From contig NC_083227.1 in assembly GCF_032191835.1 (NCBI RefSeq), positions 23,188,001-23,252,000 on the forward strand: DNA of 64,000 bases. The letters are read 5' to 3'. The notes under the pieces are model-generated. The model worked only from the letters and a program-made list of their open reading frames with translations. It was not told the origin of the DNA and made no database searches. Both the position numbers and the translations under genes were made by a program. The stretch is from Heteronotia binoei (Eukaryota). This document shows, piece after piece, positions 2,313 through 47,171 of the stretch (positions within the stretch are counted from its first letter, which is position 1; each line of letters opens with the position of its first letter).

Positions 2313-2952
2313 CCTTAATTCAGTCCCATTTGCCTGGTCACAGCTTCAAGCTTGAACCTTACGTTACTGTTAATGGAGAAATCTAAAAATGAATTGGATA
2401 AATTAAAAACAGAAATCACTGATTTGGTCACAGCTCCAGCCACGCTAATATTTCCTGAAGTTTCTTCTTCCTGGAAAGTTTGGGCACACTCACATGATGA
2501 ACTCACATGACCCTTCATAGTGGTGAGTTCTTGTAAATATGTTTTTCCATCTCAGCACCTGGCTTCAAACCCCAAGAGAGAGTCTTGGATGGTGGGTATT
2601 CTGTCCCTTCCATCCAAATCGTGGTGATTTATTCTGATTCTTAGCAAAGCTCCAGGGATTTCTCTGAAGTTCACTTGGAAACTAGCAAGGTAAACCTTGG
2701 AACCAAGAGCAAGAGGATGTAATGTCTTGCAACAGGCCTGGGAAGCCTGGTGCATAAAAGCTTTTTGTCTCAATGAGTTCAGGGGGTGAGATCTCTGGGG
2801 TTGGGGGGACTGTGTCCCTGTGAAGCTATCAGTCTGATTCAGCCTGGGCTGGACTGCTCAAGTGACTGCAGCTGTGATCTTGCCAGGGGCTCCTGCAGCT
2901 TCTTCAGGCAGTCTTTGAGAGAAGGTTACTGGGACAGGAAAGCTGCAAGAAG

Positions 2953-3182
2953 ATGGAGAGTATGATCTTGCCTCTCCTTCTGCTGCAGCTGCTTCTTACA
3001 GCTTGAGTGGTGGGGGGTGGCAAATGCCCATTTATTGTGACAATGGATGAGATCGAGCCCTTTAATTACTTCCGAACAGGAGACTATCTTGTTGCTGGAC
3101 TTGTCACTTCAATATGTACTAGCATGATCTCATTACAAACCTTCCGGGAGCCTCCCTTTTCTCCTTCCTTTTTAAATAAGAG
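2953..3182 (+). CDS. Vmn2r: V2R-A exon 1 (signal peptide, TGA at codon 18, GC donor)
   Basis: Reads MESMILPLLLLQLLLTA*VVGGGKC...YFRTGDYLVAGLV. Ends AAG AG|GCAAGT in phase 2, matching exon 2. Confidence 0.85.
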
Positions 3183-3459
3183 GCAAGTCAGCCCTTGGTG
3201 AACTTTTTAATCATATATGATGGTGGGACAGGGTTTTGCTGTATTTCTTACTAACAAATGCCACTTTGCTTCTATCTCCTGCATGTGATGTGACTAAAAT
3301 ATTGCTAAGTGTTTTTTCACTGCTAAGAATCTGGGAGTAAAGCATTTTATAATGTACTCTCAAATTGAAGAAGAAAGACATGGATTTGATCAGATCACTA
3401 CCGTGGCTCTTTGAATGTCCAAATGGAGACAGAGAGGCTCCAGTGGGGTGGTTTGTAAG

Positions 3460-4384: not shown

Positions 4385-4673
4385 AAAACGAGGTCTGATT
4401 TGGCACCGCCTTGCCTTCTCATTGGCCATTCAGGAGATTAACCAGAGTCCCAAACTCTTACCAAATAATACCACCCTCGGCTACACCGTCTATGAGAAAA
4501 AATTTCATCCCAGGGTGACGAATGATGCTTTGATAGACCTGCTATCTGCCCAGGAGACTATTCCAAACTACAAATGCGGCAGAAAGAATAATCTCTTGGC
4601 TGTTCTTGAAGGATCTGAATGTGACGTCTCCACTGATGTTTCAACACTCTTGAGTACCTACAAAGTTCCTCAG
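4385..4673 (+). CDS. Vmn2r: V2R-A exon 2
   Basis: Acceptor ttcctggcag|, reads HRLAFSLAIQEINQSPKLLPNNTTLGY...YKVPQ, donor |gtatga. 289 nt. Confidence 0.92.
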
Positions 4674-5744: not shown

Positions 5745-6578
5745 GTCAGTCATGATGTTGATTTGGCAGTTCTTAAGGATAAAACTCGGTTTCCTTTCTT
5801 CTACCAAATGGCCCGAAAGGAAGAAGCCCAATACCTGGGAATTGTCAAACTGCTCTTGCATTTCCGATGGACGTGGGTCGGTCTCCTTACTTCAGGCAGT
5901 GAGAGTGGGGAAAAATTCAAGAGCATCTTAACACCTCTCATGCTCAAGAGCGGCATCTGTGTTGCCTTTGCAGACGGCATCTCAGAACATGGTGTTGTTT
6001 CCAGGACCAGGTCAGAAGAAAGAATGCAACACTTTATTTCATTCCTCATTCAAGGCCAAGTAAATGTATTTGTTTTCTACGGAGATGTTAAATACATAGT
6101 AAACTTTGAAGTAGCCATACACATGGTTGAACATAAAATGAATGTCAATTTTCATACAGTTTGGATCACAACGCTTTTGTTGCACTCCCTCTTAAGCTTG
6201 GGCTGTCTTTCTTCTCCTCTTGCATTATCCATGCATGGATCTCTCTCTGTCATGATCCAAGCAAACAAAAGGAGGATATATCATTATTTACAAGTCTGTA
6301 ACCCTCTAGTTCAGGAGTTCGTGGAGAAAGCATATGATTCCTTCTACTCAAAGCCCATTCTGACTGTGAGAGGCCACCTGAGATGCAGAGAGAAAGAAAG
6401 GCTGGAGGACAGGGGCTGGAAGGTCCTGAAAGAATACCTGCCTCCCAGAGCCAGCAATATTTACACCTCAATCCATGCGGTGGCACAGGCCTTATATGCT
6501 GCTTACTCATCCAGGTCTGAGAGAAGGAAAAAGACTGGTGGAGAAAGACAAGAACATGAACCCATACAGCCTTGGCAG
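5745..6578 (+). CDS. Vmn2r: V2R-A exon 3 (Venus flytrap domain)
   Basis: Acceptor after a T tract, reads LKDKTRFPFFYQM...GIVKLLLHFRWTWVGL...IHAVAQAL...IQPWQ, donor |gtatcc. 834 nt, open. Confidence 0.93.
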
Positions 6579-6630
6579 GTATCCCTTTTCTGTCAATTAA
6601 GAATAATAATTGGAAGTTCTTCTTTGAAAG

Positions 6631-7985
6631 TAAGTAAGTAAAGTAAGTAAAGTAAAATTTTATTTATATCCCGCCCTCCCCCGCCAAGCAGGCTCAGGGC
6701 GGCTAACAACAGCAAAACAACAATACATTTAACAAAACATTAAATTAACCCCAAACCGATTAATACATTAGTTAAAACAGTTACTAAGTCTAAAAACATT
6801 AGGTTAGATCTGACAGTACCGTTATTAATCGACGCTATGCCTGTCAGTTTGTGAATGATGGCGGATCTCCAGACTGGACCATTTTGATGTTTCTTTGTGG
6901 ACTTGGTCAGCCGTTCATGAATGCCTGTTTGAAAAGGGTGGTCTTGCAGGCCCTGCGGAACTGATCAAGGTTCCGCAGGGCCCGCACCTCCTCTGGGAGT
7001 TGATTCCACAAGGAAGGGGCCGCGGTAGAGAAGGCCCGTGCATAGGTAGTCCGAAGTTTAACTTCTTTTGGCCCAGGGGTGGTCAATCTGTTTTTACCTA
7101 CTGACCTCAGTGCTCTCTGGGGCTCATACGGGGAGAGACGGTCCCTCAGGTAGGTCGGTCCTCGGCCATATAGGGCTTTAAAGGTAATCACCAGCACTTT
7201 GTACTGGACCCGGTATACAATCGGCAGCCAGTGCAGTTCGCGCAGCCCCGGCCGTATATGCTCCCATCTTGAGAGGCCAAGCAGCAGCCTGGCTGCCGCG
7301 TTCTGCACTAGCTGCAATCTCCGGGTCTGGCACAGAGGCAGCCCCATGTAGAGGGCGTTACAGTAGTCCAATCTTGAGGTGACCGTCGCATGGATCACCG
7401 TTGCTAGGTCCCGGCGCTCTAGGAAGGGGGCCAACTGCCTCGCCCGCTTCAGATGAAAGAATGCTGACTTGGCAGTGGCTGTTATCTGGGCCTCCATTGA
7501 TAATGAAGGCTCCAGTAAAACACCCAAGCTCTTTACCCGCTGCGCCGCCGTCAGCGGCGCACCGTCAAAAGTCGGGAGAGATATTTCCCTCCCCAGAGCG
7601 CCACAACCCACACAGAGAACCTCTGTCTTCGCTGGGTTCAGCTTCAGCCCACTCAGCCTAAGCCATGTTGCAACAGCCTGTAGGGCCTGATCCAGGCTCC
7701 CCGGGGCAGAGGCGGGCCGGCCGTCCATTAGCAGATAGAGCTGGGTGTCATCTGCATATTGATGGCAACCCAGCCCAAACCTCCGGACAAACTGGGCAAG
7801 AGGGCGCATATAGATGTTAAATAACATCGGGGAGAGAACTGCTCCCTGGGGCACCCCACAATCTAGTGTGCGCCTCTGGGATTGTTCACCCCCAATTGCC
7901 ACCCTTTGTCCCCGACCCATGAGGAAGGAGGAAAGCCATTGTAAGGCCAACCCCCTAACCCCTATGTCGGCGAGGCGGATGATTG
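6631..7985 (-). mobile_element. L2-clade LINE, 5'-truncated, copy-A specific
   Basis: ORF 6907-7950 has RT motifs (GVPQGAVLSP, YADDTQLY, RLDYCNALY). Simple-repeat tail at about 6631-6660. The empty site ctttgaaag|gatgattgtgg is at 46462-46481. Confidence 0.9.
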
Positions 7986-8356
7986 GATGATTGTGGATGT
8001 ACAGTGCAGTGGTAGAAGGACAGTTTATTGGATAGTCTCAGGCAGAGCTAAAAGGAGCTAAAAGGAGCATCAGGTATGTGTGTTTAGGAGAAATCTTGGG
8101 GTATTCAAACACTGTCAAGGTCTGATGATATTCCCCAGACATCAATCTATCCAATACAACACTCGCCATATTCTTGTAACCACATCTAATTGATATAGCA
8201 ACATTCTAAAAGAGCAACATTATTCATCTTTTGTTACTGGTGTGTAGATGAAGCTAAGAGAGAGCAACCTGCTTAATATCACATGAACAAAAAGCATGTG
8301 AACCAAATGTTTGAAGAACCCCCACTCCTGCTTTTTGTCATAGATCTCAACCAGTT

Positions 8357-11168
8357 AAGAACATAAGAACATAAGAGAAGCTATGTTAGATCAGGCCAAT
8401 GGCCCATCCAGTCCAACACTGTGTCACACAGTGGCCAAAAAAAATTATATATATATATATATACACATACACACTGTGGCCACACTAATAGCCACTGATG
8501 GACCTCTGCTCCATATTTTTATCTAACCCCCTCTTGAAGGTGGCTATGCTTGTGGCTGCCACCACCTCCTGTGGCAGTGAATTCCGCATGTTAATCCCTC
8601 TTTGGGTGAAGAAGTACTTCCTTTTATCCATTTTAACCTGTCTGCTCAGGAATTTCATCGAATGCCAACGAGTTCTTGTATTGTGAGAAAGGGAGAAAAG
8701 TACTTTTTTCTCTACTTTCTCCATCCCAAGCATTATCTTGTAAAGCTCTATCATGTCACCCCTCAGTTGACGTTTCTCCAAGCTAAAGAGCCCCAAGTGT
8801 TTCAACCTTTCTTCATAGGGAAAGTGCTCCAGCCCTTTAATCATTCTAGTTGCCCTTTTCTGGACTTTCTCCAGTGCTATAATATTCTTTTTGAGGTGCG
8901 GCGATCAGAACTGCACACAGTACTCCAAATGAGACCGCACCATCGATATATACAGAGGTATTATGATACTGGCTGATTTGTTTTCAATTCCCTTCCTAAT
9001 AATTCCCAGCATGGCATTGGCCTTTTTTATTGCAAATGCACACTGTCTTGACATTTTCAGTGAGTTATCTACCACGACCCCAAGATCTCTCTCTTGGTCA
9101 GTCTCTGCCAGTTCACACCCCATCAACTTGTATTTATAGCTGGGATTCTTGGCCCCAATGTGCATGACTTTGTGTAGCATCGATCCAAAAACAATACCAG
9201 TTTTAGATCCACAAAAGGACCTGTCCTTTTACTCCATGACTCTCGAGCTATCTAAGGAGACTTTGATGAGGAACTTTATCAAAAGCTTTCTGGAAGTCAA
9301 GGTAAACAACATCTATCGGGTCTCCTTCATCCACATGTTTGTTCACCCCCTCAAAGAAATGTAACAGGTTAGTGAGGCAAGATCTTCCCTTACAGAACCC
9401 ATGCTGAGTCTTCCTCAATAACCCGTGTTCATCAATGTGCCTACTCATTCTGTCCTTGATAATGGTTTCTACCAACTTTCCCAGTATTGAAGTCAGACTG
9501 ACTGGCCTGTAATTTCCCAGATCTTCTCTGGAACCCTTTTTAAAGATGGGGGTGACATTTGCTACCTTCCAGTCCTCAGGAACGGAGGCAGATTTCAATG
9601 AAAAATTACAGATTTTTGTTAGAAGATCCACAAGTTCAACTTTCAGTTCTTTCAGAACTCTCGGATGTATGCCATCCGGACCCGGTGACTTATTATTTTT
9701 TAATTCGTCTATCAGTTGTAGGAGCTCTTCTTTTGTCACTTCAATCTGACTCAGGTCTTTCAACACCCCTTCCAAAATTAGTGGTTCTGGGGCGGGCAAA
9801 AAGTTTTCATCTTCCACAGTGAAGACGGAGGCAAAAAATGCATCCAGCTTCTCAGCCATTTCCCTATCCTCCTTCAGTAATCCTTTTACCCCATGGTCAT
9901 ACAAGGGCCCCACTGCCTCCCTGGCTGGTTTCCTGCTTCTAATATATTTGAAGAAATTTTTATTGTTGGTCTTTATGTTTTTTGCAATATGCTCCTCATA
10001 GTCCCTTTTTGCCTGCCTGATCACAGTCTTGCATTTGATTTGCCACAGCCTGTGTTCCCTTTTATTAATCTCACTTGGACTGGTTTTCCACCGCTTAAAG
10101 GAGTCCTTCTTACCTTTTTCAGCTTCCATTACTTTATTTGTTACCCATGAAGGCCTTTTCTTATGCCTGTTTGTGCCTTTCCTAACTTGTGGTATGTATT
10201 TTATCTGAGCTTCTAGGATTATAGTTTTAAATAGTCTCCAAGCTTCCCCAAGGGTTTTGACCGTATTTACCTTTCCTTTCAGTTTCCTCCTCACATGCCT
10301 CCTCATCTCAGAGAATTTACCCCTTTTAAAGTTAAACGTGGTTGTGACGGTCTTTTTGGGCAACTCCCTATTTATACAAACGGTGAAATCAATAACATTA
10401 TGGTCACTTCTTCCAAGTGTCGCAATCACTTTTACATCTCTCACCAAGTCTTGGGCATTACTTAGGACCAAATCCAGGCTCACCCCACCCCTGGTAGGTT
10501 CTTAGACCATCTGCTCCATAGCACAGTCATTGAGAGCATCAAGAAACTCAATCTCTTTCTCTCGACCAGAACGCATATTGACCCAATCAATCTGCGGGTA
10601 AAAATCACCTATTATGACACAGTTTTTACGTTTAGCCGCTATCTTTAAACCTTCTATCATATTATAATTGTTCTCTCTCTTTTGATTTGGTGGGCGATAA
10701 CAAACTCCCATAGTTAAATTTCCTTTTGGGCCCTCTATTTCAACCCAAAGCTTTTCTAAAAGGGAATCTAATTCTCTGACCTCAGTCTTACTGGACCGTA
10801 TATCCTCTCTGACATACAGAGCCACCCCACCTCCAACCCTTCCCTCCCTATCCTTCCGATATAACTTATATCCAGGAATCACCGTGTCCCACTAATTCTC
10901 CTCATTCCACCAAGTTTCTGAAATTCCCACAATGTCTATGTTTTCTCCCAACACTAAACATTGCAATTCACCAATTTTACTTCGAACACTTCTAGCATTT
11001 GCATTAAAAATATCTATAATTTCCCAGGCAAGCTAGGCCCGCCGCCTTCCTCCTGCCGCCTCGAGACTCTGGCAGACAGTCCATACTGTTAGTCACCATC
11101 ACAGTGGACAACTCTGATCCGTTACCCGGTAGAAAAATAGCAACCAACCCTTCAATAGCAGCCAACCC
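8357..11168 (-). mobile_element. CR1 LINE (endonuclease and RT, disrupted), copy-A specific
   Basis: Endonuclease fragment 10502-10882 and RT 9248-10483 (SPGPDGIHPRVLKEL, YLDFQKAFDKVPH). CR1 tail (TTCTTATG)n. The empty site caaccagttgaagagg is near 46825-46840. Confidence 0.92.
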
Positions 11169-14253: not shown

Positions 14254-15625
14254 CTTCATCAGTGTGGCATGTGTTTTATCTAAGGTCTCAGAAGGCTGAT
14301 GGCTCCTGAATGCAGCTGGGAAGTGATATGGTGGTGATAGGGGAACAGTAATGGAAAGTTCTGTTTACATGGGGGAAAGAAGTCAGGGACGTACAGGTAT
14401 GCCTCCTATTATTCTATGAAATTTTGGTGGAGTGTGAGCCTGGCATCTCAGCTGGCCCTGAGGAAGAGCCCCAAGAACTGTGGCACTCTGACCTCCTTTG
14501 AGAAATGAGCTCTATGGTACTCTGGAAGGTTACAGAATGTAACATTGATCCATAGTCACATCCTCAATGTCATTTTGTACCAACTGGATTCTCTGAGTTG
14601 AACTCAGTTACATTAGTGTGGCTAGAAGATGCCTGGAGTACATTCATGCACAGCAGTCCAGAGGAAACTTTTATCTGTTTAAAAAATTACAACACCCTCA
14701 TATCTCTTCTGAATCCTGGCACTAAACACAGCAGTCTGATTAAGAAGATTTTCAATGGTGCATGAGATAAAAACACACTCAAGTAAACTATTTTCAGAGG
14801 GTTGCTGTGCTGGTCTGTAGGAGAACAGCCCAGAGTGGGGTAGAAGGATTCAAGGTTCTCTAGTCCTAGTTGTATAGGATGAAAGGGAACTTGGACTCTC
14901 AAACACTGAGGCCCCGCCCACCTCCAAATCTTTTTGATGTCAAGGGAGTTGCTAGACTTGAGTCCACCAAATTGAAAACAATGCCAAGACCACAGGTTTA
15001 GAAATGCAGTTATTGAAGAACTCAGCCATTTAAAACAAAACAAAACAAAAGTTTTAAACACAGAGAGCATTAAGACAAACACAGCCAATTTGGATTTCCA
15101 TTCATTTGGGAAACAGATTTGTTCTCGATTCTTCTTAGTCATTTCTCATACAAAAGGGGATTTTAATCACCCAGTGTGAGGACTACAAAATAGATATGAT
15201 GATCAGAGGAACACTGTAGATGATCCAGAGTCACCAGTGGTGGATATCTTGTATTAACCATCACCCATAATGAGTAAGAATATCCCTGTAGATTTGGGGG
15301 TGGAGTGTGGCCCTGGACCATTCAATGAAGAGTCTGTACAGATGAGTGCTTAATGCATTGGGCTGGGATTTGGGGGGTGGAGGTTTGAGTCTTCCGTCTA
15401 CTGAAGAATTTTTGTCTAGTGACTCCCGCTTAGCCTAACATATCTCAGTCATTGGGAGATGGAGACAGTCATGCTATCATGAATAATTTTTCATTCTTTG
15501 CTGAGAGAAAATGATGGCATAAACATCTAAATGTATAAAACCGACAACTAAGAGGAAAACCACAGCCGTAACGAGCTTGTAGAAAAGCTGTCCTCTAAAT
15601 GCTGCTGTTCTCTCTGTGTTTCTAG

Positions 15626-15853
15626 CTTCATCCTTTCCTGAGACACTTCCAGTTACACAACACTTCCATGGGTGGAATGGATTTTAGTGAAAATGGGGAC
15701 CTGGAAGCCAACTTAGACCTTGTGAACATGGTCATCTTGCACAACTTTTCCATCTTGAGCATAAAAGTTGGGAGTATAGAAAGACAGGCCTCTGGGGAGA
15801 TGAAGCTGACCATTGATCAGGATGCTATTGTGTGGCCCATCTGGTATAGGCAG
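15626..15853 (+). CDS. Vmn2r: V2R-A exon 4
   Basis: Acceptor tttctag|, reads LHPFLRHFQLHNTSMGGMDFSENGDL...DAIVWPIWYRQ, donor |gtgtgg. 228 nt. Confidence 0.92.
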
Positions 15854-16128: not shown

Positions 16129-16255
16129 ATGCTGCCTGATTCCAGGTGTACCAAAAGCTGCCTCCCTGGATATGTGAAGGTGGAGCTGGAAGGAAGGCCC
16201 ATTTGCTGCTATAACTGTGCTCTGTGTGGAGAAGGGACCATCTCCACTCAGGAAG
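16129..16255 (+). CDS. Vmn2r: V2R-A exon 5 (Cys-rich domain; absent from the ORF track)
   Basis: Acceptor atacatag|, reads [42 protein letters not shown](D), donor |gtgggt. 127 nt, phase 1. Confidence 0.92.
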
Positions 16256-16929
16256 GTGGGTGATGAAAGAAACGGACACCCCTTTGGGTATGCAGCAAAG
16301 AATCAGTTTGTTATTTTCTAAGCGGGCTACAACTTTTTGGACTAGTCTTTCTTTTCCAGTTTTCGAAGGGAGAGACTACTGAGTAAATGGAGGTGAGTGT
16401 GGAGAAAAGTTCAGCACCATCAACTTTTGTTGCTTTGAGTGGCATTTATGATTGTTAGGGCGATGCCATACACTGCGGTCCTTTGTGTGCAGGGTCAGTC
16501 CTGTCAGATAAATCAGGCTTGTATGCATACATTTCCCCCAAATCCTCTAGTATCCTAGGAATCCCTTGAGAGGCATGCAGGTGTTCCTTGGTACACCTGT
16601 TGATGTCACACAGGTTGTAGCTGAGTAGTTTTGAGCCATGTATTATTTCACTGGATTGGTGTGAGGATATAGTGGGGTAATTTCATGAATTACCAACTGA
16701 AAGGTGGCATCCACATGCAATACTCAAGTCACGGTTTTTGTCCTTGGCTTAGCTTTAGCTCTGCATTTGTACTGGAAAACTCAACCTTCTACTGAAGCTG
16801 AGGTCCATCTGGCAACAATACTTTGACAGCAGCTCTCCCATATCTGAGGCAGCTATGCTTTGATAACCAAGGGATCCCTTGGTGCGGTAATATCAAGGAT
16901 GAACCAGGAACGCTGCCTTGTAGTGCTTT

Positions 16930-18599: not shown

Positions 18600-21500
18600 A
18601 CTGTTGGGAAGCAGATCATAGCCCTTTTCTAATATTGTTAAAAGAAGAATGTAAAAAAATTAGATGGAGATTGAACATGCAGTTACTATAAAAGGAGCAA
18701 TTTGTTCTGGATGCAGAAAAAGAACTCATTTTTTTGAGGTGAATAAGCAAGAGGAAACATCCCCATGTACCATTTGGAATGTGAGCAAGTCATATTTTAG
18801 GGGAATAGCAATTAAATAGAATGCAAGACAAAATAAGATGAAGAGACAAAAAAGTGATGGAATTAATCTCGACTCTTAAAAATAAGGAAGATGGTTTGAA
18901 AAGAAATCCCTCAAGTAAGACATTGAAGTCTGAGATAAAATTGTTGCAGCATCACTTGAATGTACTACATCTTGATGAGGTGGTGAAAAATATTAGATAT
19001 GCAAGACAAAAATATTTTGAGTGGGCAAATAAGTCCAGGAGATGGTTGTCTTATAAAATAAGAAAAAAGGAGAATAATTTTATATATTCATTATGAGATA
19101 AGAAGGGTGAAAAAAGATTTCAAAAGAAAGAAATCAAAGAGATAGTAAGAGACGTTTATAGAGCTGTACCAAAAAACAGAGATTAAGAAAAAAGATCAGA
19201 TTGAATATTTGCAATCACAATGATTGCCAAAATTAAGTGATGAGCAAAGGAAGATATTGAATGATCCAATAACGATACCAGAAATAAAAGAAGCCATGAC
19301 AAATATGAAAAAAGGGAAGGCTCCAGGCCCAGATGACATTCCTTTGGAATATTATATTACATTTGAAGATTGTCTCCTATTTCCATTCAAAAGATTGTTA
19401 CTACATATCTGAAACTTTGCTGAAATACCAGGAACTTGGAAAGAGGCAAATATTACTTTAATACCAAAAGGAGAGACGAACTTAAACGAAATAAAAAATT
19501 ATAGGCTGATCTCACTGTTAAACAAGAATTATAAGATCTTTGTTGCAATTCTTTCAAGAAGAATGAAAAGAATCTTACATCATATTATTCATAGTGACCA
19601 ATCAGGTTTTTTTTTTTACCTCAGAGACAAATTAGAAATGACATTAGAACAATCTTAAATGTGCTGAAATATTGTGAAGTACACAACAAAAAGAAATTTG
19701 CCCTAAATTTTCTTGATGCTGAGAATGCGTTTGATAATCTAGATTGACAGTTTTTATTTGAAGTATTGAAAGAGATGGAATTTGGGGAGAAGTTTGGAGA
19801 TATAGTGCAAGCGATCTATTCTAATCAAAAAGCCAGGATAATTGTTAATGGAGAAATAACAGATTGTATTGAACTATGGAAAGGGACTAGACAGGGTTGC
19901 CTTCTGTCACCACTATTATTTATATTGCATTTGAAAGTTTTAAATATTGCAGTTTGAGAGAACAAGGATATCCAAGCTCTTAGAGTGAAAGGGGAGGAAT
20001 TTAAAGTACCATTCGCTGATGACCAAGTTTTTATACTGGAGGAACCGATAGAGTCTATCATAGCTTTAAAAGAAGAATTAAATAAGTTTGGGAAAGCCGC
20101 AGGCATGAAAGTTAATTTTGGGAAAACAAAAATGATAGTTAAAAATATACCTACCCAAATGCTAACGGAATTGGAAGGGAAATCCAACTTCCTAATTGTG
20201 AAAAAAGTACGGCATTAAGTTTTAAAACAACATTAAAATGATACAGTGATTTAAATCAGCAATATCTACAACCATTCCAGTTAATAATTTAATAATTTAA
20301 CAGCAGCAATGATGTTCCTGGCGCTATTCCGTCCATTGGCATAGTGGCAGAGTCACTAGATAGAATCATTTTGATGGATTGATCGACCATCCTTTGTCAG
20401 CAGTCCGCAAAGGCCTGCTTAAAAAGGATGGTCTTGCAGGCCCTGCGGAATTGGTCAAGACCCCGCAGGGCCCGCACCTCTTCCGGGAGCTGGTTCCACA
20501 GGCACGGAGCTGCAACAGTGAAGGCCCGTGCGCGGGTGTTCTGCAGTTTCGCCTGCTTTGGCCCAATACAGCTCATTAAAATGAAGAATCATGTAAGCAA
20601 CATCCAAGCAGCCCATCCTCAAGGTCATGGGCAAAGGTGATCAAGTTGGCTGAGTTGAGATGAGAATTGATTTCCATGCTAGATAGGGATGGAAGCAATA
20701 GCCATATAACTATTCCTGACATCATGTGCAGGACCATCTTTGAGGGAAACTATAGTAAGCTCTTGAAAGATTTGATTACCGTAGATGGGGAAGCTTACAG
20801 CTTTCATTTATGGGTAGGATTGCAGCCCTGAAAATGGCAATACTTCCCAAAATTACGTTTCTGTTTCAAGTAATACCTATACAATTAAAAAAATCTTTTT
20901 TTCAGTCAATTAATAAAGTTACGAGTAAGTTTATTTGGCAGGGTAAGAAGGCCTGGATTAAATATAAACTCTTGCAAGATGTTAGAGAGAGAGGAGGACT
21001 AGCATTACTAAATTGATAGCTTTATTACCGAGCTTGCATCTTGTTATGGATTAAAGATTGGATTAAACTAGGAAACAAGAGATTTGAAAACAGGCTGGTA
21101 TGCGTTTGGTATGAAATTAGTGGACCTAAATATTTTCAAAATAATTTACTAAGAAAATCTGTATTAACGGTGTGGGGGAAAGTGCGGAGGATGTTATATA
21201 ATAAAATACCAAACTGGGTAGCCCCATTAGAAGCTTGCATGCAATCCAATTTATCAAAAAAAGAGACATTTATAAGATATAAAGAAGTGCTGGATAAAGA
21301 AGGAACACTGAAATCAAGCAGTGAATTAAGAGCTCAAAATATTATCTTAGACTGGTGGCCAATGACACAGCTGAAGTCAAGATTTAAATTGGTTTTTATG
21401 TTCAAGATCATTTATTTGATAAGTTGCTATTAGAGAATGATGAAAAATTGATAAGTAAGGTTTATAAATATCTCCTCCAAATAGAAATGCAAGATGAAGA

Positions 21501-23640: not shown

Positions 23641-23872
23641 TATATATTTGGGGTTTTAGCCAACTCCAGATAATAAATAAAGAACTTCCTATTTCATGAT
23701 TTTATTTTTATAGCTTTCTAGTTTTGTGCCCAAAGGACAGAAAGCCCCCCGCCAACACACACACAAAAATCATCACCCCAATGCATAGGCTTTATGAAAT
23801 ATAAAGGAGTACAGACTGACATGGAAATGAATGAGATATCCATGATGCTAAAGTCAGTGTCTTTCTTTCCAG

Positions 23873-24783
23873 ATGCAGATCATTGCACCAAGTGCCCAGA
23901 AGATCAGTATCCCAATCTGGACCACACTCAATGCATTCCCAAAGATATAATTTTCCTTTCTTATGAGGAAACTTTGGGGATTATTCTCATTGTTTTGATC
24001 CTGTTCTTCTCCATGGTCACACTTCTAATTCTTGGAATCTTCATTAAATATATTGATACTCCAATAGTCAAAGCCAACAACCGAGACCTCACCTACATTC
24101 TTCTCATCTCACTCCTGATTTCCTTTCTGTCCTCCCTTCTGTTCATTGGTCAGCCAGGGAGGGTGACCTGCCTTCTCCGACAAACTACCTTCAGCACCAT
24201 CTTCTCCATTGCTGTCTCTTCCGTGTTGGCTAAAACAATCACTGTGGTGGTGGCCTTCATGGCCTCCAAGCCAGGAAGCAGGATGAGGAAATGGCTGGGG
24301 AAGAATCTGGCAAATTCTATTGTCATTGTCTGTTCAAGTGTTCAAATGGGCCTCTGCCTCATCTGGCTGAGTATCTCTCCCCCCTTCCCAGAGTTTGACC
24401 TGCACTCCCATAGTGGACAGATGATATTGCAATGCAATGAAGAGTCAGTGGCCCTGTTTTATGGTGCCCTGGGCTACATGGGCTTTCTGGCTGCCATCTC
24501 CTTCACAGTGGCTTTCCTGGCCAGAAAGCTTCCAGGGACTTTCAATGAAGCCAAGCTGATCACTTTCAGCATGCTTGTCTTCTGCAGTGTGTGGGTGTCG
24601 TTTGTGCCCACCTACCTGAGCACCAAGGGGAAATACATGGTAGTCGTGCAGGTCTTCTGCATCTTGGCCTCCAGTGCTGGTTTGCTGGGATGCATCTTCC
24701 TTCCCAAATGCTACATCATTATAGTGAGACCTGATCTGAATACTAAGGAACATCTAATGGCAAAAACGGAATCTAATTCTTAG
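23873..24783 (+). CDS. Vmn2r: V2R-A exon 6 (end of Cys-rich domain and 7TM)
   Basis: Acceptor ctttccag|, reads (D)[14 protein letters not shown]...[13 protein letters not shown]...[18 protein letters not shown]...PKCYII, stop TAG. Fully open. Confidence 0.95.
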
Positions 24784-26219
24784 CAGATTGCTTTTATCTT
24801 TTGCATTGCTGTGTTCAACATGTCAGCAACATACTTGTATTGAGAGTATATCACAGAGAGATGTCTTATTCTTTCACATACTTCATGAGAGATACTGTAG
24901 GACTACATAGTGAGATTGATATGCACAGTTTAATGACTTGTTGTTCTTTAGTTTGAATATTTGCATTTCATTGGTTGCCAACTTGTGTTTGGGTATTCTT
25001 GGAGGTTTCAGTGCTCTTTGTGGGGATAGCGGAATTTCAGGACATATACCAGCAGGGATATGAAGCCCCATCCTAAAATTCCATACCCAAATCTAAGCTC
25101 TTCCAGTTCCTCCCCAGCTACACCAACTCCTCCCACTAAAATTCAGTTTTTAATATTCTTTTATCTTCACAATAATGGGATTGGATGATTTCCCCATTGT
25201 TGGTGTGCCTGCCTATGAAGCATTGTAACGAAGCCCCACACATTGCTTGGTTTTAAGCGAGGTATTTTACTTTGGCATCAAAGTAGAACTTGTCAGCATA
25301 AGCTCAAAATGACTAAGTTGATCAGCCTTCTGACCATTTTTATTCATCCCCAAACAAGCAGACAAACCCCCTCTTATCTAATTCTAATGCTCCACCTCCT
25401 GCTTTCATTCCAGTAATTTCTTGTAGTTTTCCACTGCTCTGTCCCTCTGCTTATCAGCAATAAGCTCCTTCTCTGCGGGGCCCCTGTTATCTTGGATTCA
25501 CACCCTTAGCCTGTCTGGTTTTAACAGTTTAGCAGAAGCTCCTTTGAGGGGCCTCTTAAATGTCACTCTAAATGTTGCATCAGACATTCTCTTTTGAAGG
25601 CACAACCATATTTTCAATTATTATTATTATTGAGGTATTCATTAATTATTCAGGGGTCCCTCTTCAGCATATCTCCAAGAGAAGGGGGTAGAAACTTTAA
25701 AAAAAATGAAAGTAGGAAGTTCAGAAAAGCTGTTCCATAATATATAGATACAAAGATATTCTAGTGCTTATTTATAGAAGACCCACCTCAGAGGCTAAAA
25801 TGACTGCTGTGGGGATAGGATAAAAAAGAAAAAAGGCTGCCACAAGGACCTGAAAATCTGAATTTTTCCAAGCACAAAGCAGGTGTTCAGGTTCTGTAGT
25901 GATCTTTTCCAAAACTTCAGAGCCAAGCATGCTGCAGAAAGACTGGAGAAAATCCAGTGGAAAGAAGTGCACAAAGGTACCACAACACAGCAGAGAAAAA
26001 GGTAGACCCCTCCAACCACCCCCCCTTGAGTCCAAAAAGCATTGGACTAGAGGTAAATAACTTTAGTGGAACACACCTCAACCTAAAAAACAAACAAACC
26101 AACTTCAGGCTTCTCCATTTCTGTAGAAATTTGGTGCCTCCCTCTGTTCTCACTACATTGTAAATATGTGTTCCTATTTATTTATTGATGTGATTTAAAA
26201 TGGGGGTGGGGGTGGGCTC

Positions 26220-29200
26220 CCTCGGGTATCCTGCCCTCTCAGGGAAAGTGTATGCGCAATACATCGCCTCTCCTTTCCCGGTGTAGTGAACGCCGCGTGG
26301 TCACTGTCTGGCTATGCCTGGCAGATGGTCACTGCAATGGCCTCTCCTGCATTACCGCATCCATGGCAACACCTTCTCGCTGCCCCCCCCCGTTTCTCAC
26401 AGAGTTTGCCACGTCATGGTGCGACCAAATGTCCGGCTGTATAACCGAATGGGCAGGCTGGGCTCACCAAACTCGCCAGCCAAGAGAAGGAAAACTCTAA
26501 CATCAAACCCGGGCAGATAGAGCTCGTTAATGTAACACCTATCACCTGGAGGACTCGCTGCCGGCGTCCCAGCTTACTGGGCCATGGCAGATGACCCCAA
26601 GGTGAAAGGGTGGAGCCACTACCGCGCACACTGTGCTTCACCTAAAAATTCACCTGAAGGGCATATCCACATCCACAACCCACAACACACCAAGTCCTGC
26701 AGCGATGGGCAAGGGGCGAAACGGCAGGTGGAAGATGCCACTGGAAGCCGCAATCCCGATCCTGCATTTGGGCGGTTCAGAGTATTGGTCGCCTGATGCT
26801 GACCCGGAGACAAAAGCATTTTTCGGCAGCACCCTGAACGACCAAGCAGCCTTATCTAGGGAAAGCACTGCTTGCTCTGCATGGAGAGGGGCCTAAAAAG
26901 GTGGCCTAAACAAAGCTCATCTCCTCCCCCCCCCAGTTGGCTAGCCGCGGTCAACGGCTTCCTTACTTATGGTCAAAAAATAACAACAAAGAAAAGGCAT
27001 GCACCTGCCTCACAAAGTGTGCAAAGACTAAAGCTTGCGTGTTGGAACATCAGAAACATGCTTGACACAGTAGACAGTGGTTGCCCTGAACGACGCTCTG
27101 CTCTAGTTGCCCACAAACTTCTCAGGTTGAATATTGACATAGCAGCTCTCAGTGAGGTCCGTTTCCCTGAGGAAGGTTGTCTTCAAGAACACAGTGCTGG
27201 CTATACCCTCTACTGGTCGGGTAAGTCAAAGGCTGAGAGCCGCCTTTCTGGCGTGGGCTTCATGGTCAGGAACTCCATTGCCTCCAAACTCGAAAACCTG
27301 CCAACAGGCCACTCAGATCGCATCATGTCAATGCGCCTCCCACTTCAAAACAAGCAGCATGCAACACTCTTCGGTGTGTATGCCCCAACCCTTCAAGCAG
27401 ATCATGCAGAAAAGAACAAGTTCTATCCTGATCTACGCAACCTCATACGGAAGACCCCTACAGAGGACAAGGTGATCATCCTTGGCGACTTTAATGCCAG
27501 AGTAGGTAAAGACTCGGAAGCCTGGAAAGGAGTACTTGGCAAACACGGCATTGGCAACTGCAATGATAACGGGCGCCTCCTGCTAGAATTCTGCACAGAG
27601 CACCAGCTCACCATCACCAACACTATCTTTCAGCAGAAGAACAGTCTGAAGACAACCTGGATGCACCCACGGTCCAAGCACTGGCACCTTATTGACTACA
27701 TTCTGGTGCTCCAGAGAGACCTTCGAGATGTCTTACACACCCGAGTAATGCCTAGTGCGGAATGTCATACGGATCATCGTCTTGTACGCTGCAATCTCCG
27801 TCTTCACTTTAAACCCACACCCAGGAGAGGAGGTATCCCTCGGAGGAAGCTTCAGGTTGGCAGCCTTCAGTCAGCCGAAGTTAAAGCTGCCTTCCAGGCA
27901 AAACTCCAGTCAAGAATTGAGCACCCCAGTTGCTGCACAGACCCTTCTCCAGAAGCACTCTGGGAACACCTAAAGCTACCATCCTGTTGATCTCTGAAGA
28001 AGTCCTTGGGTTCTCCACAAGGAAGAACAAGGACTGGTTCGACAAGAACAATCAAGAGATCCAAGAATTACTAGCGAAAAAGAGATCTGCCTACCAAGCA
28101 CATCTTGCTCAGCCCTCCTGTCCCGGGAAAAAAGCAATCTTTCAAGCTGCATGTAGCAACCTCCAGCGCAAGCTTCGAGACATTCAGAATGAGTGGTGGA
28201 CCAAGCTTGCAGAGAGAACCCAGCTGTGTGCAGACACTGGTGATTCAAGAGGGTTCTACGAAGCCCTGAAGGCAGTATATGGTCCATCATATCAGGCTCT
28301 GAGTCCCTTGCGTAGTGCAGACGGCCAAGTGCTCCTCACAGACAAGGCATCCATACTGAACCGGTGGTTGGAGTATTTTCAGGTTCTCTTCAGTGCCAAC
28401 CGCGTAGTTCAAGATTCAGCAATCCACCTCACCCCACTTCAACCAGTGAAAACAGAGTTGGATGAGATCCCGACCCTAGAAGAGACTTTTAAAGCCATCA
28501 AGCAACTGAAAAGTGGCAAGGCAGCGGGAGTTGATGGAATCCCACCAGAGATCTGGAAGCATGGGGGCACAGTACTACATAGCACACTTCACAAAGTACT
28601 TGTCACCTGCTGGGAACAAGGCAAACTACCACAGGACTTTCGCAATGCAATCATCATCACCCTACACAAGAACAAAGGGGAAAAGTCAGACTGCTCCAAC
28701 TACCGGGGGATAACCCTGCTCTCCATCGCAGGCAAAATCCTTGCCAGAATACTCCTGAACAGACTGGTGCCCACCATTGCAGAAGAACTCCTCCCAGAGA
28801 GCCAATGTGGCTTCAGAGCTAACAGGAGCACCACCGACATGGTATTTGTTCTCAGACAGCTCCAAGAGAAATGCAGGGAACAGAACAAGGGTCTATATGT
28901 GACTTTTGTCGACCTTACCAAAGCTTTCGATACTGTTAGCAGGAAAGGTCTGTGGCAAATCTTGGAACATTTAGGATGCCTCCCAAGGTTCCTCAGCATG
29001 ATCATCCAGCTACATGAAGACCAGCGAGGCCAAGTCAGACACTGCAACAACCTCTCGGAGCCCTTCCCAATAGGCACAGGTGAAAAGCAAGGCTGCGTTC
29101 TCGCGCCAACTCTCTTTACGATCTTCTTTAGCATGATGCTTGAAAGAGCCGCAGTAGATCTAGATGATGACGATGGTGTCTACATCCGCTATTGCACTGA

Positions 29201-30277
29201 TGGAGGCCTGTTCAACCTGAGGCGACTGAAGGCTCACTCCAAAACAATAGAAAAACTCATCCGAGAGCTACTGTTTGCTCATGATGCTGCACTCATCTCC
29301 CACTCGGTATCAACTCTGCAGCATATGATGTTCTGCTTCGCAGAGGCTGCCAAGCTATTCGGCCTAGAAGTTAGTCTGAAGAAGACAGAAGTTCTCCACC
29401 AGCCTGCACCTCAGAAAGATTATCATCCTCCCTGCATCACTGTGGGTGAATCAGTTCTGAAGACAGTCCAGCAGTTCAGCTACCTGGGGTGCATCATCTC
29501 CTCAGACGCCAAGATCGACAAGGAGATTGACAACAGGCTGGCAAAGGCAAACCGTGCATATGGCCGACTGCACAAAAGAGTGTGGAGCAACAAGCATCTG
29601 AAAAGAGGCACAAAGATCAATGTTTACAAAGCGGTTGTGATGACAACCCTCATCTACAGCTCCGAATCGTGGGTTTTATACCGTCATCACCTGCGATTCC
29701 TTGAGCGCTTTCATCAGCGCTGCCTTCGCACCATCCTCATTATCCACTGGAGTGACTTTGTGACCAACACTAAAGTCCTCAAGCGGGCAGAGGTTACAAG
29801 CATCGAGGCACTGCTGTTGAAGACGCAGCTGTGCTGGGCAGGGCATATTTCTAGGATGGAAAACCACCGCCTTCCCAAGATTGCTCTGTATGGCGAACTT
29901 TCCACTGGCCATCGAAATAGAGGGGCACCAAAGAAGAGGTACAAGGACTCCTTGAAGAAATCCCTTGGTAACTGTCGCATCAACCATCACCAGTGGTCTG
30001 ACCTATTCTCAGATCGCAAAGCATGGAGGCACACCATCCACCAGGCTGTCTCTTCCTTTGAGAACGCACACATAGCTGGTCTTGAGGACAAAAGGAGATT
30101 GAGGAAGAATCGCACTGCTACAGCACCAACCCCAAATCAGACTTTTCCCTGCAGCCACTGTGGCCGGATCTGCCTGTCCCGCATTGGTGTTGTCAGCCAC
30201 CAGCGAGCCTGCAGCAGACGTGGACTACTGCACCCTTCTTAAATCTGCGTTCGCGAAGTCAAGCCGAGAGAGAGAGA
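26220..30277 (+). mobile_element. Near full-length RTE-clade LINE (not BovB)
   Basis: Long 5' UTR, APE endonuclease 26872-27990 (WNIR, LSEVR, GDFNARVG, HLIDY) and RT 27930-30242 ending in a CxxC...HxxxC finger. (GA)n tail. One frameshift near 27975. The 5' edge is approximate and no TSD was found. Confidence 0.93.
26365..26456 (+). ncRNA. Candidate HDV-like self-cleaving ribozyme (degenerate) in the RTE 5' UTR
   Basis: Folded by eye. P1 GGCAAC/GTTTGCC, P2 CTGCCC/GGGCAG, P3-L3 CCG-TTTCTCA-CAG, and J4/2 CGAA immediately before P2'. Several imperfections. Confidence 0.45.
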
Positions 30278-31111: not shown

Positions 31112-32097
31112 CTGGCCCTAAAGGAGTACACATGATTGTGGATATGAATGAGACATACATGATACTGAAGTTACTCTTTTCCTTTCCAGATGCAGATCAT
31201 TGCACTGAGTGCCCAGAGGATCAGCATCCCAACCTGGACCACACTTTGTGCATTCCCAAATATATCATTTTCCTTCCTTATGAGGAGACTTTGGGGATTA
31301 TCCTCATTGTTTTGGTCCTGTTCTTCTTCATAGTCACACTTCTAATTCTAGGAATCTTCATTAAATATACTGACACGCCGATAGTCAAAGCCAACAACCG
31401 AGACCTCACCTACATTCTTCTCATCTCACTTCTGCTTTCCTTTCTGTCCTCTCTTCTGTTCATCAGCCAGCCAAGGAAGGTGACCTGCCTTCTCCGACAA
31501 CCACCTTTAGCACCATCTTCTCCATTGGTGTCTCTTCTGTGTTGGCTAAAATGATCACTGTGGTGGTGGCCTTCGTGGCCACCAAGCCAGGAAACAGGAT
31601 GAGGAAATGGCTGGGGATGAGTCTGGCAAACTCTATCATCATTCTCTGTCCAGTGTTCAAATGAGCCTCTGCTTCATCTGGCTAGGTACCTCTCCCCCTT
31701 CCCAGAGTTTGACCTGCACTCCCATAGTGGACAGATGATATTGCAATGCAACGAATGGTTTGTGGCCCTTTTTTATGGTGCCCTGGGCTACATGGGCTTC
31801 CTGGATGCCATCTCCTTCACAGTAGCTTTCCTGGCCCGAAAACTTCCCGGGGCCTTCAATGAAGTCAAGCTGATCACCTTCAGCATGCTGGTCTTCTGCA
31901 GTGTTTGGGTGTCCTTTGTGCCCACCTACTTGAGCACCAAGGGGAAATACATGGTAGCTGTCCAGGTCTTCTCCATCTTGGCCTCCAGTGCTGGCTTGCT
32001 GGGTTGCATCTTCCTTCCCAAATGCTACATCATTATAGTGAGACCTGATTTGAATACCAAGAAACATCTAATGGCAAAAACAGAATCTAATTCTTAG
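30410..32097 (+). pseudogene. Vmn2r: Remnant of an older V2R paralog: intron-3 and intron-5 pieces plus a frameshifted exon 6 (31190-32097)
   Basis: Exon 6 homolog with an intact acceptor and three 1-bp deletions (near 31501, 31650 and 31695). 30410-30660 matches intron 3 of copy A and 30930-31000 matches intron 5. No exons 4-5 were seen. Confidence 0.88.
31039..31107. repeat. (AAT)n microsatellite
   Basis: About 23 perfect AAT units. Confidence 0.97.
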
Positions 32098-32299
32098 TAG
32101 ATTACTTTTATCTTTGCATTGCTGTGTCCAACATGTCAGCAATATACTTGTGTTGAGAGTAAATCAGTGAGAAACGTCTTATTCTTTCACGTACTTCATG
32201 AGAGCTACATAACAAGATTGATATGCATATTTTAATGACTTATTGTTCTTTAGTGTCAAGGTTAAAAACTTCCTTCCTTTTGATCCATCAGAAGTCCAT

Positions 32300-34239: not shown

Positions 34240-34452
34240 TGAACATATGAAGCTGCCTTCTACTGAATCAGACCCTCGGTCCATCGAAGTCAGTATTGTC
34301 TACTCAGACTGGCAGCAGCACTCCAGGGTCTCAAGCTGCGATTTTTCACACCAATTTGCCTGGACCTTTTTTTTTTGGAGATGCCGGGGATTGAACCTGG
34401 GACCTTCTGCTTACCAAGCAGATGCTCTATCACTGAACCACCATCCCTCCCC
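34240..34452 (-). mobile_element. tRNA-derived SINE (family of 4009)
   Basis: Minus strand has GGTTCAGTGATAGAGC and the B box GGTTCAATCCC, with the shared body. Confidence 0.8.
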
Positions 34453-41926: not shown

Positions 41927-42848
41927 AAGATGCTCCAGCAGATGGATGCTCAAGTTGGGTTCTGGTTCTGGGGTAAGGCCTCTGCTGTTGCCAGTGTGGT
42001 TGTCATGGCAGAGAATGGGAAAGCAGGGATCACCAGGTCTTAATCAGTGTTCCCTGAAAGATGAGTTAGTGTGAACTAGCTCACAGTTTTTTAGCCCCAG
42101 AGAAAAGTAATTTATGAAGTAGCTCACCACTTTAATGCACGTGGCTCACAAAGTAGAATTTTTGCTCACAGGACTCCACAGCTTACAGGGAGTACTCTTA
42201 ATTCAGTCCCATTTGCCTGGTCACAGCTTCAAGCTTGAGCCTTACGTTACTGTTAATGGAGAAATCTAAAAATGAATTGGATACATTAAAAACAGAAATC
42301 ACTGATTTGGTCACAGCTCCAGCCCCGCTAATATTTCCTGAAGGATCTTCTTCCTGGAAAATTTGGGCACACTCACATGATGAACTCACATGACCCTTCA
42401 TAGTGGTGAGTTCTTGCAAATCTGTTTTTCCATCTCAGCACCTGGCTTCAAACCCCAAGAGAGAGTCTTGGATGGTGGGTACTCTTTCCCTTCTAATTAT
42501 CCAAATCGTGGTGATTTATTCTGTTTCTTAGCAGAGCTCCAGGGATTTCTCTGAAGTTCACTTGGAAACTAGCAAGGTAAACATTGGAACCAAGAGCAAG
42601 AGGATGTAATGTCTTGCAACAGGCCTGGGAAGCCTGGTGCATAAAAGCTTTTTGTCTCAATGAGTTCAGGGGGTGAGATCTCTGGGGTTGGGGGGACTGT
42701 GTCCCTGTGAAGCTATCAAACTGATTAAGTCTGGGCAGGACTTCTCAAGTGACTGCAGCTGTGATCTTGCCAGGGGCTCCTGCAGCTTCTTCAGGCAGTC
42801 TTTGAGAGAAGGTTACTGGGACAGGAAAGCTGCAAGAAGATAGAGAGT

Positions 42849-43069
42849 ATGATCTTGCCTCTCCTTCTGCTGCAGCTGCTTCTTACAGCTTGAGTGGTGG
42901 GGGGTGGCAAATGCCCATTCATTGTGACAATGGATGAGATCGAGCCCTTTCATTACTTCCGAACAGGAGACTACCTTGTTGCTGGACTTGTCACTGCAAT
43001 ATGTACTAGCATGATCTCATTACAAACCTTCCGGGAACCTCCCTTTTCTCTTTCCTTTTTAAATAAGAG
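42849..43069 (+). CDS. Vmn2r: V2R-B exon 1 (TGA at 42891, GC donor)
   Basis: Reads MILPLLLLQLLLTA*VVGGGKC... and ends AG|GCAAGT. Confidence 0.85.
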
Positions 43070-43346
43070 GCAAGTCAGCCCTTGGTGAACTTTTTAATCA
43101 TATATGATGGTGGGACAGGGTTTTGCTGTATTTCTTACTAACAAATGCCACTTTGCTTCTATCTCCTGCATGTGATGCGACTAAAATATTGCTAAGTGTT
43201 TTTTCACTGCCAAGAATCTGGGAGTAAAGCATTTTATAATGCACTCTCAAATTGAAGAAGAAAGACATGGATTTGATCAGATCACTACCGTGGCTCTTTG
43301 AATGTCCAAATGGAGACAGAGAGCCTTCAGTGGGGTGGTTTGTAAG

Positions 43347-44247: not shown

Positions 44248-44536
44248 GGAACGAGGTCTGATCTGGCACCGCCTTGCCTTCTCATTGGCCATTCAGGAGA
44301 TTAACCAGAGTCCCAAGCTCTTACCAAATAATACCACGCTTGGCTACACCGTCTATGAGAAAAATTTTCATCCCAGGGTGACTTATGATGCTTTGATAGA
44401 CCTGCTATCTGCCCAGGATACTATTCCAAACTACAAATGCGGCAGGAAGAATAATCTCTTGGCTGTTCTTGAAGGATCTGAATGTGACGTCTCCACTGAT
44501 GTTTCAACACTATTGAGTACCTACAAAGTTCCTCAG
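44248..44536 (+). CDS. Vmn2r: V2R-B exon 2
   Basis: 289 nt, open, AG/GT bounded. Confidence 0.92.
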
Positions 44537-45584: not shown

Positions 45585-46418
45585 ATCAGTCATGATGTTG
45601 ATTTGGCAGTTCTTAAGGATAAAACTCTGTTTCCTTTCTTCTACCAAATGGCACGAAAGGAAGAAGCCCAATACCTAGGAATTGTCAAACTGCTCTTGCA
45701 TTTCCGATGGACGTGGGTTGGTCTCCTTACTTCAGGCAGTGAGAGTGGGGAAAAATTCAAGAGCATCTTAACACCTCTCATGCTCAAGAGCGGCATCTGT
45801 GTCGCCTTTGCAGAGGGCATCTCAGAACATGGTGTTGTTTCCACCACCTGGTCAGAAGAAAGAATACAACACTTTATTTCATTCCTCATTCAAGGCCAAG
45901 TAAAAGTATTTGTTTTCTATGGAGATGTTAAATACATAGTAAGCTTTGAAGTAGTCATACACATGGTTGAACATAAAATGAATGTCAAATTTCATATAGT
46001 TTGGATCACAACGCATTTGTTGCACTCCCTCTTAAGCTTGGGCTGTCTTTCTTCTCCTCTTGCATTATCCATGCATGGATCTCTCTCTGTCATGATCCAA
46101 GCAAAGAAAAGGAGGATATATCATTATTTACAAGTCTGTAACCCTCTAGTTCAGGAGTTCATGGAGAAAGCATATGATTCCTTCTACTCAAAGCCCATTC
46201 TGACTGTGAGAGGCCACCTGAGATGCAGAGAGAAAGAAAGGCTGGAGGACAGGGGCTGGAAGGTCCTGAAAGAATACCTGCCTCCCAGAGCCAGCAATAT
46301 TTACACCTCAATCCATGCGGTGGCACAGGCCTTATATGCTGCTTACTCATCTAGGTCTGAGAGAAGGAAAAGGGCTGGTGGAGAAAGACAAGAACATGAA
46401 CCCATACAGCCTTGGCAG
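45585..46418 (+). CDS. Vmn2r: V2R-B exon 3
   Basis: 834 nt, open, AG/GT bounded. Confidence 0.93.
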
Positions 46419-47171
46419 GTACCCCTATTCTGTCAATTAAGAATAATAATTGGAAGTTTTTCTTTGAAAGGATGATTGTGGATGTACAGTGCAGTGGTAG
46501 AAGGACAGTTTATTGGACAGTCTCAGGCAGAGCTAAAAGGAGCATCAGGTATGTGTGTTTAGTAGAAATCTTGGGGTATTCAACCACTGTCAAGGTCTGA
46601 TGATATTCCCCAGACATCAATCTATCCAACACAACACTTGCCATATTCTCGTAACCACATCTAATTGATATAGCAACATTCTAAAAGAACAACATTGTTC
46701 ATCATTTGTTACTGGTGTGTAGATGAAGCTAAGAGAGAGCAACCTGCTTAATATCACATGAACAAAAAGCATATGAACCAAATGTTTGAAGAACCCCAAC
46801 TCCTGCTTTTAGTCATAGATTTCAACCAGTTGAAGAGGGTGAAGCATGAATCGGGGCAAATCCCAGAATTGTTTGTCTAGGTCATAGACTTCTCAGAATA
46901 TGAGATACTGTCACATCTTGACAGAGATAAATGTCCAACATCATTCAGACCATGCATTCATGCCTCCTGCATTCTTGAGAACTGGTTATAATGTAAGGGC
47001 TGGAAGGGATGGTCAAAGGGGTAATGATCATGCAGTCCAAGTAAATAGAGTGGGACTTCTGGGATCAGAGAAAGATTTCATTCATGTAGGTTGGTTTAAT
47101 CTTTGGAACAATAAAGAAAGGCCCTATGAACTACTAATCTAGCATATATGATGACCAGTTTTGGGGAGATG

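Follow-up and report, generated by a model that had tools for sequence, protein, structure and literature searches.

Two tandem vomeronasal type-2 receptor (V2R) paralogues lie within the analysed window, a 64,000-nt stretch of Heteronotia binoei DNA, and both carry the same premature TGA in exon 1. This raises the question of whether the two genes have been dead since before their duplication, have been silenced recently, or are still functional because the stop is somehow bypassed. A first-pass annotation of the window had considered three possibilities, namely tissue-specific readthrough, re-initiation at a downstream ATG, and a very recent stop.

The window has the composition of vertebrate DNA, with 45% GC and a CpG observed/expected ratio of 0.35. 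Comparison of the window with itself yielded a tandem duplication with a period of ∼40 kb and one V2R gene per unit: positions 1-23574, carrying copy A, are colinear with positions 40011-62825, carrying copy B, and the breaks in colinearity correspond to copy-specific transposon insertions. In long ORFs, Pfam domains were identified at 5763-6641 and 45603-46475 (ANF_receptor) and at 23794-24783 (7tm_3). Gene models were refined using tblastn with gecko V2R proteins and inspection of the exon junctions. Database searches were run for each exon separately, as was the codon analysis, from which the two split codons were omitted.

Copy A is comprised of six exons on the forward strand with the total length of 2619 nt. 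Exon 1 (2953-3182) encodes the signal peptide and the first strand of the ligand-binding domain, as follows from the alignment with homologues. Exon 2 (4385-4673) encodes the N-terminal part of ANF_receptor, and exon 3 (5745-6578), its core; the latter exon is 834 nt long, as it is in Gekko kuhli and Paroedura picta. Exon 4 (15626-15853) is followed by exon 5 (16129-16255), which encodes the NCD3G cysteine-rich domain, and by exon 6 (23873-24783), which encodes the complete 7tm_3 domain and ends with TAG at 24781-24783. In copy B, also on the forward strand, exons 1-5 (1708 nt in total) occupy positions 42840-43069, 44248-44536, 45585-46418, 55742-55969, and 56229-56355, the last of these again encoding NCD3G. 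Each of them aligns with copy A as one ungapped block, and the splice dinucleotides are identical. Exon 6 of copy B is outside the window, past the retroelement insertion in intron 5 at 62826.

The exons of both copies retain the features of the family. Exons 2 and 3 match PF01094 (E 4e-07; 1.7e-13 / 1.8e-14, respectively), and exon 5 matches PF07562 (E 6e-14 / 9e-14), with every aligned cysteine of this exon retained in the alignment with the homologues from G. kuhli and P. picta. In copy A, exon 6 covers positions 1-251 of 251 in PF00003 (E 3e-81). The proteins nearest to exon 3 come from G. kuhli (58-59% identity), Sphaerodactylus townsendi (55%), and P. picta (53%); the best P. picta match is named "vomeronasal type-2 receptor 26-like", and the G. 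kuhli proteins are unnamed. Neither the representative search nor the word search yielded a homologue with more than 59% identity to exon 3. Exon lengths are equal to those in G. kuhli for exons 3-6 and to those in P. picta for exons 3-5. By sequence, A and B are thus V2R (class C GPCR) genes and, formally, pseudogenes: in neither copy are the signal peptide and the frame uninterrupted, as the TGA falls at codon 15 counted from the conserved ATG.

The window also contains other elements. Between copy A and a relic 7TM exon described below, two overlapping ORFs with endonuclease and reverse-transcriptase (RT) domains mark a non-LTR retrotransposon (26872-30242, forward strand). RT-bearing insertions are found in intron 3 of copy A (6630-11163). 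Intron 3 of copy B contains a B-specific LTR-type retroelement with RT, RNase H, and integrase (49740-54449, reverse strand), and its intron 5, a B-specific Ty3/gypsy-type element with a chromodomain integrase (62826-64000, reverse strand). The sole Rfam match in the window lies in intergenic sequence of unit A and resembles tRNA-Thr(GGT) (34376-34448, reverse strand; 45.5 bits with the Rfam tRNA model, also found by ARAGORN); it may be a SINE head, a tRNA gene, or a pseudogene.

The two stop codons, at 3004-3006 in copy A and at 42891-42893 in copy B, are both in frame, in agreement with the first-pass annotation. In copy A the TGA is in frame with two ATGs, at 2953 and 2962, being codon 18 or 15, respectively. 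Conservation singles out the second ATG (2962 in A, 42849 in B) as the start, while the first one adds three residues; hence, the change of ATG to ATA at 42840-42842 costs copy B only an extra, non-conserved start. The TGA, in the context UGA GUG, precedes the likely site of signal-peptide cleavage, placed by eye, by about six codons. Thirty-seven nucleotides past the stop there is another in-frame ATG (3043-3045, ACAATGG, with A at -3 and G at +4), whose Met is found in three of the five homologues considered below; the product starting there would lack the signal peptide. The annotated ACAATGG and UGA-G contexts are indeed present in the sequence, and the TGA at 3004-3006 is the sole internal stop in the 2619 nt of copy A, with neither another stop nor a frameshift in the 1708 nt of copy B, as had been claimed.

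We compared these exons with five homologous loci, three from G. kuhli (L001, L003, and L004) and two from P. picta (L002 and L005). Exon 1 is open in all five and encodes a signal peptide colinear with that of A and B. At the position of the TGA, the four alignable homologues have TGC, TGC, TAC, and GGC (residues C/C/Y/G), and the surrounding codons are conserved (ACA GCY before, GTG GGG shortly after). Since the homologues have an open exon 1 with these sense codons at the site, the comparison indicates that the shared stop is derived. The same codons contradict the origin suggested by the first-pass annotation, that is, CpG decay of CGA to TGA. As regards the homologues themselves, the gene prediction at L001 starts at an internal Met (MDEVESF) despite the open upstream signal peptide. 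The same locus contains a 7TM exon at 19978-20874 (forward strand) and a second one, ∼4.3 kb downstream and tail to tail with it, at 25224-26129 (reverse strand).

The second unusual feature shared by the copies is a GC donor of intron 1, GAG/GCAAGT, at 3183-3188 in copy A and 43070-43075 in copy B. All five homologues have GT at this site, and so the switch from GT to GC is lineage-specific and older than the split of A and B. A GC donor need not be a defect, because about 1% of human introns use such donors (PMC3167603; PMC2490688). Like typical working donors of GC-AG introns, the A/B donor matches the consensus perfectly at all other positions; it differs from them in being a lineage-specific switch.

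If both copies had been dead since before the duplication, they should have accumulated further lesions. To derive the neutral expectation, the A-to-B substitution matrix, including the CpG context, was estimated from 15.2 kb of aligned non-exon sequence. This alignment has 4.2% mismatches and 66 indel events, plus kilobase-sized transposon insertions, and thus the introns are as rich in indels and insertions as had been stated. The 66 events correspond to 637 substitutions; 55 of them are frameshifting, including 36 that do not result from tandem slippage. Given the 54 substitutions in exons 1-5, one would expect 2.6 new stops and 3.1-5.6 indels in these exons, with further 1.3-2.0 lesions in exon 6 of copy A. 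This makes 7.0-10.2 lesions in total, while none was observed beyond the shared TGA (P from 9e-4 to 4e-5). Such a simulation of disabling mutations had been suggested by the first-pass annotation, and its outcome supports the claim that the frames remained under constraint after duplication, the support coming chiefly from the missing lesions rather than from dN/dS. The unconstrained share of the time since duplication is at most 29-43%. With 7-10 lesions expected and none seen, the model is incompatible with A and B having both been dead already when they began to diverge.

Dead V2R sequence at this locus does gather lesions, as evidenced by the frameshifts and stops in a lone duplicate of the 7TM exon, which we call exon 6' (31190-32100, part of a longer stretch at 31119-32254). 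Exon 6' is what remains of a lost V2R gene or of a duplicated exon; it differs from exon 6 of copy A by 8.8% and has three 1-nt deletions and internal stops. Its ratio of synonymous to nonsynonymous differences indicates that exon 6' was probably constrained for most of its history, prior to decay. For this reason we rejected it as a pure neutral control.

The substitutions themselves are less telling. In exons 1-5, A and B differ at 54 of 1708 sites. The Nei-Gojobori method assigns these to 33.5 nonsynonymous and 19.5 synonymous differences, plus one synonymous change in the codon split between exons 1 and 2 (AG/A in A, AG/G in B, both Arg). There are 4 nonsynonymous and 8 synonymous differences in exon 2, and 8 and 10, respectively, in exons 1 and 2 combined. 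Hence, the earlier hand counts, 33:20 overall and 4:8 in exon 2, are reproduced. Synonymous divergence of exon 1 is ordinary (3/54 sites). Under the neutral model, the expected share of nonsynonymous or nonsense changes is 0.734, while the observed share is 33.5/54 (0.62; one-sided P 0.03-0.06). The ratio is therefore shifted below neutrality in the direction that had been claimed, but only marginally. The first-pass annotation had advised a codon-model analysis with orthologues; a pairwise GY94 (F3x4) comparison of A and B yielded omega of 0.58 (LRT against omega=1, p=0.077). In exons 3-5 the A-B omega is 0.92, compared to 0.48-0.54 for the same exons among A, G. kuhli, and P. picta. Taken alone, dN/dS is equivocal.

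On the long branch to the other geckos omega is 0.48-0.54, equal to omega between those geckos, and therefore there was no long relaxed period. Amino-acid differences between A and B are found in 14 of 155 columns (9.0%) in which the outgroups differ and in 10 of 241 columns (4.1%) in which they agree, and are spread over both copies. Both copies also have radical changes at conserved positions (W>R, L>H, H>P, R>L). The intermediate omega between A and B, approaching 0.9 in exons 3-5, together with these radical changes, fits recent relaxation.

An apparent deficit of exonic substitutions relative to the introns (54 observed, 73.7 expected, P=0.007; for Nd, P=0.004) was down-weighted, because mismatch clusters inflate the intron mean, and the background class of 2.6-3.1% equals the exon divergence. 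These clusters form a class of non-exon sites with 17-36% local divergence and make up about 2.5-10% of columns. In exons, six A/B differences occur in adjacent or nearly adjacent pairs (4385/4386, 4520/4521, 6004/6005, 6532/6534, 15739/15741, 15746/15747). Both the paired differences and the mismatch clusters point to multinucleotide mutation or to micro-conversion from other paralogues.

In order to see how the stop could be tolerated, we considered the possible ways of bypassing it. The context of the TGA, UGA GUG, is not a readthrough-permissive one. UGAGUG belongs to the strong termination contexts, with readthrough in mammalian cells near or below detection; most contexts fail in less than 0.2% of cases, and only those of the UGAC type approach 3% (Cridge et al., PMC5829715). 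No stable structure was found after the stop, as the 116 nt fold no better than shuffled sequences (z = -0.85). A scan of the whole window, including the 3' flank of copy A, at Rfam gathering thresholds detected no SECIS element, and selenocysteine decoding of the TGA was rejected, as it would have to proceed without a SECIS in the window. The sole complement to the stop region is an intronic 15-nt match (87%) located 510 nt downstream, inside a 22-nt insertion that is found only in A and is absent from B. An editing duplex is thus unlikely, its only complement being A-specific and not retained in B. Moreover, G is the least favoured 5' neighbour of an adenosine edited by ADAR. Frameshifting or slippage through the G6 run was also rejected, as neither of the other two frames has a start and both run into stops. 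Re-initiation at the ATG at 3043 is mechanistically plausible and would follow an upstream ORF of 14-17 codons. On the other hand, GPCR biogenesis requires the signal peptide to translocate the extracellular domain of ∼550 residues.

Overall, no bypass mechanism finds sequence support. As for the proposals of the first-pass annotation, readthrough is at odds with the strong UGAGUG terminator (PMC5829715) and the unstructured downstream region, and re-initiation at 3043, with a product devoid of a signal peptide. The very recent stop provides the best fit of the three, but requires gene conversion between the copies, because A and B share the stop.

The TGA resides in a near-identical stretch of 176 nt (2857-3032) with a single A/B difference (at 2955), which sets the largest possible recent conversion tract. 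The A/B differences nearest to the TGA are 49 nt upstream and 27 nt downstream of it, and the 150 nt of exon 1 following the stretch contain six differences. As a conversion tract, the stretch is suggestive only and not an outlier: stretches of at least this length with such low divergence cover 11.5% of the aligned positions, and, in terms of divergence, the best 400-nt window around exon 1 ranks at the 5th percentile. Two- and three-state HMMs over 17 kb separated a class with 2.6% divergence, one with 5.6%, and mismatch clusters, with no freshly homogenised class below 1% divergence. In young human duplicates, the mean non-allelic conversion tract is 250 bp long, and conversion affects a site about ten times as often as point mutation does (bioRxiv 10.1101/135152). 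The putative conversion is therefore compatible with the data and plausible from the published rates. If the tract were the 176-nt stretch, its coalescence would be at roughly one seventh of the locus average, and about one further lesion would be expected. The longest runs free of A/B differences flank exons 4-5 (16325-16588, 263 nt, and 15258-15461, 203 nt). Against the 2.6% background these runs are not significant, and as conversion tracts or conserved intronic elements they make only weak candidates.

We assign a probability of about one half to a young nonsense mutation shared via short-tract gene conversion, with both the conversion and the recency being deduced indirectly. The paralogues would have been under selection for most of the time since their divergence, and the silencing would be recent. 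In one copy, a single third-position change would have created the TGA from a Cys-type codon (TGC/TGY) of the C-terminal signal-peptide segment, and a short non-allelic conversion tract (up to ∼176 nt, 2857-3032) would have copied the TGA to the neighbour. The time elapsed since then would have been too short for more stops, frameshifts, or splice losses. Ordinary processes would suffice to account for all the observations. This scenario needs two ordered events, the mutation and then the conversion in the spreading direction. An old, tolerated stop fits the data equally well.

Functional pseudo-pseudogenes, with all bypass routes considered together, are unlikely in our view, though the least so among the alternatives. 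Marginally below we place a stop that is older than the duplication and is tolerated via neuron-specific UGA decoding or bypass, the V2R having been kept functional in two paralogues. Readthrough proper is rather improbable. In this case the stop would be older than the duplication, and vomeronasal neurons would insert Cys, Trp, or Arg at the TGA often enough to yield full-length receptor; as the residue belongs to the cleaved signal peptide, its identity would not matter, which agrees with the variability of this position in the homologues and its location before the likely cleavage site. We know of no vertebrate precedent for such receptor readthrough. Its advantages are that no conversion event is required and that ORF integrity in both copies, far above the neutral expectation, is accounted for; in Drosophila, moreover, readthrough of premature stops is neuron-enriched, with Ir75a as the precedent (PMC7244557). 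Yet UGAGUG is a strong terminator (PMC5829715), no stable structure follows the stop (z = -0.85), omega of ∼0.9 in exons 3-5 is above the family baseline, and the Ir75a effect itself strongly depends on the +4 base (PMC5829715). The remaining bypass routes, that is, re-initiation at 3043, an alternative 5' exon spliced in past the stop, a change of UGA to UGG through A-to-I editing, or selenocysteine, are together distinctly improbable. They could equally explain the ORF integrity above the neutral expectation, and the upstream ORF is short, the ATG at 3043 has A at -3 and G at +4, and its Met is present in three of five homologues. In addition, stops close to the start often evade mRNA decay. 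Against these routes, the product from 3043 would have no signal peptide for its large extracellular domain, no Rfam SECIS is found in the window, the editing complement is 15 nt long and A-only with a 5' G disfavoured by ADAR, and the candidate internal acceptors are behind two competing AGs.

The stop could also be an artefact, if short-read polishing copied the allele between the copies, or a polymorphism, if the assembly represents a segregating null haplotype, so that at least one intact copy exists in the species. We consider this unlikely, but somewhat less so than readthrough proper. Segregating null alleles are common in chemoreceptor families, intact ORFs would be explained by no unusual mechanism, and no near-identical stretch of exon 1 is longer than the one around the TGA (2857-3032), within which reads cannot be told apart by copy. 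Against an artefact, the copies are otherwise assembled as distinct, with differences on either side of the stop (49 nt upstream, 27 nt downstream). Finally, the TGA could have disabled the gene before the duplication, both copies drifting neutrally ever since and escaping lesions by luck. This account of the common lesion is the most parsimonious one; the GC donor that both copies have at intron 1 might represent another inherited defect, and omega of ∼0.9 in exons 3-5 is as expected, omega=1 not being rejected at the 5% level. Still, the probability of seeing no stop or indel is 9e-4 to 4e-5, even if the count of indels is restricted to non-tandem frameshifting ones. Nonsynonymous and synonymous differences in exons 1-2 number 8 and 10, respectively, and A/B differences are about twice as frequent in family-variable as in family-conserved columns (9.0% vs. 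4.1%). A long-dead pair is thus strongly disfavoured and the least probable of all readings. Returning to the young shared mutation, A and B are most likely very young V2R pseudogenes, ordinary for squamate vomeronasal receptor clusters, in which V2R transcripts with stops are a common finding (PMC3590772).

Chemoreceptor repertoires are sorted into "intact" genes and "pseudogenes" on the basis of single stops, and the A/B pair directly tests this practice. It either shows the speed at which conversion can carry a null allele from one tandem paralogue to another or provides a candidate for stop bypass in vertebrate sensory neurons. If the old, tolerated stop were true, this would be the first vertebrate chemoreceptor "pseudo-pseudogene".

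Among known systems, the closest to that possibility is Ir75a of Drosophila sechellia, also a chemosensory receptor with a single premature stop in a frame that is otherwise intact and seemingly constrained (Prieto-Godino et al. 2016, as described in PMC7244557 and PMC5829715). Ir75a is expressed in sensory neurons, a cell type with elevated readthrough in flies (PMC7244557). In Ir75a, readthrough was shown experimentally and depends on the +4 base, whereas A and B are known from sequence alone and have the strong terminator UGAGUG (PMC5829715). Further differences from Ir75a are that A and B are vertebrate genes, the stop is in the signal peptide and in two paralogues, and constraint is deduced only from the missing lesions. 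A and B also resemble squamate V2R pseudogenes, being class C genes with six exons in a TE-rich tandem array and having a stop but no large indels; in the corn snake, 39 V2R contigs of the vomeronasal transcriptome bear such stops (PMC3590772). What sets A and B apart from these is that they have the same stop at 3-4% divergence and are lesion-free beyond the neutral expectation. Unlike in known cases of interlocus gene conversion, the stretch is no statistical outlier, and demonstrating a tract would take more than two sequences and a close outgroup. As in those cases, the copies are ∼40 kb apart and 96-97% identical, the mutation is in a short near-identical stretch, and both the lengths of published conversion tracts (mean 250 bp) and the conversion rates agree with such an event (bioRxiv 10.1101/135152).
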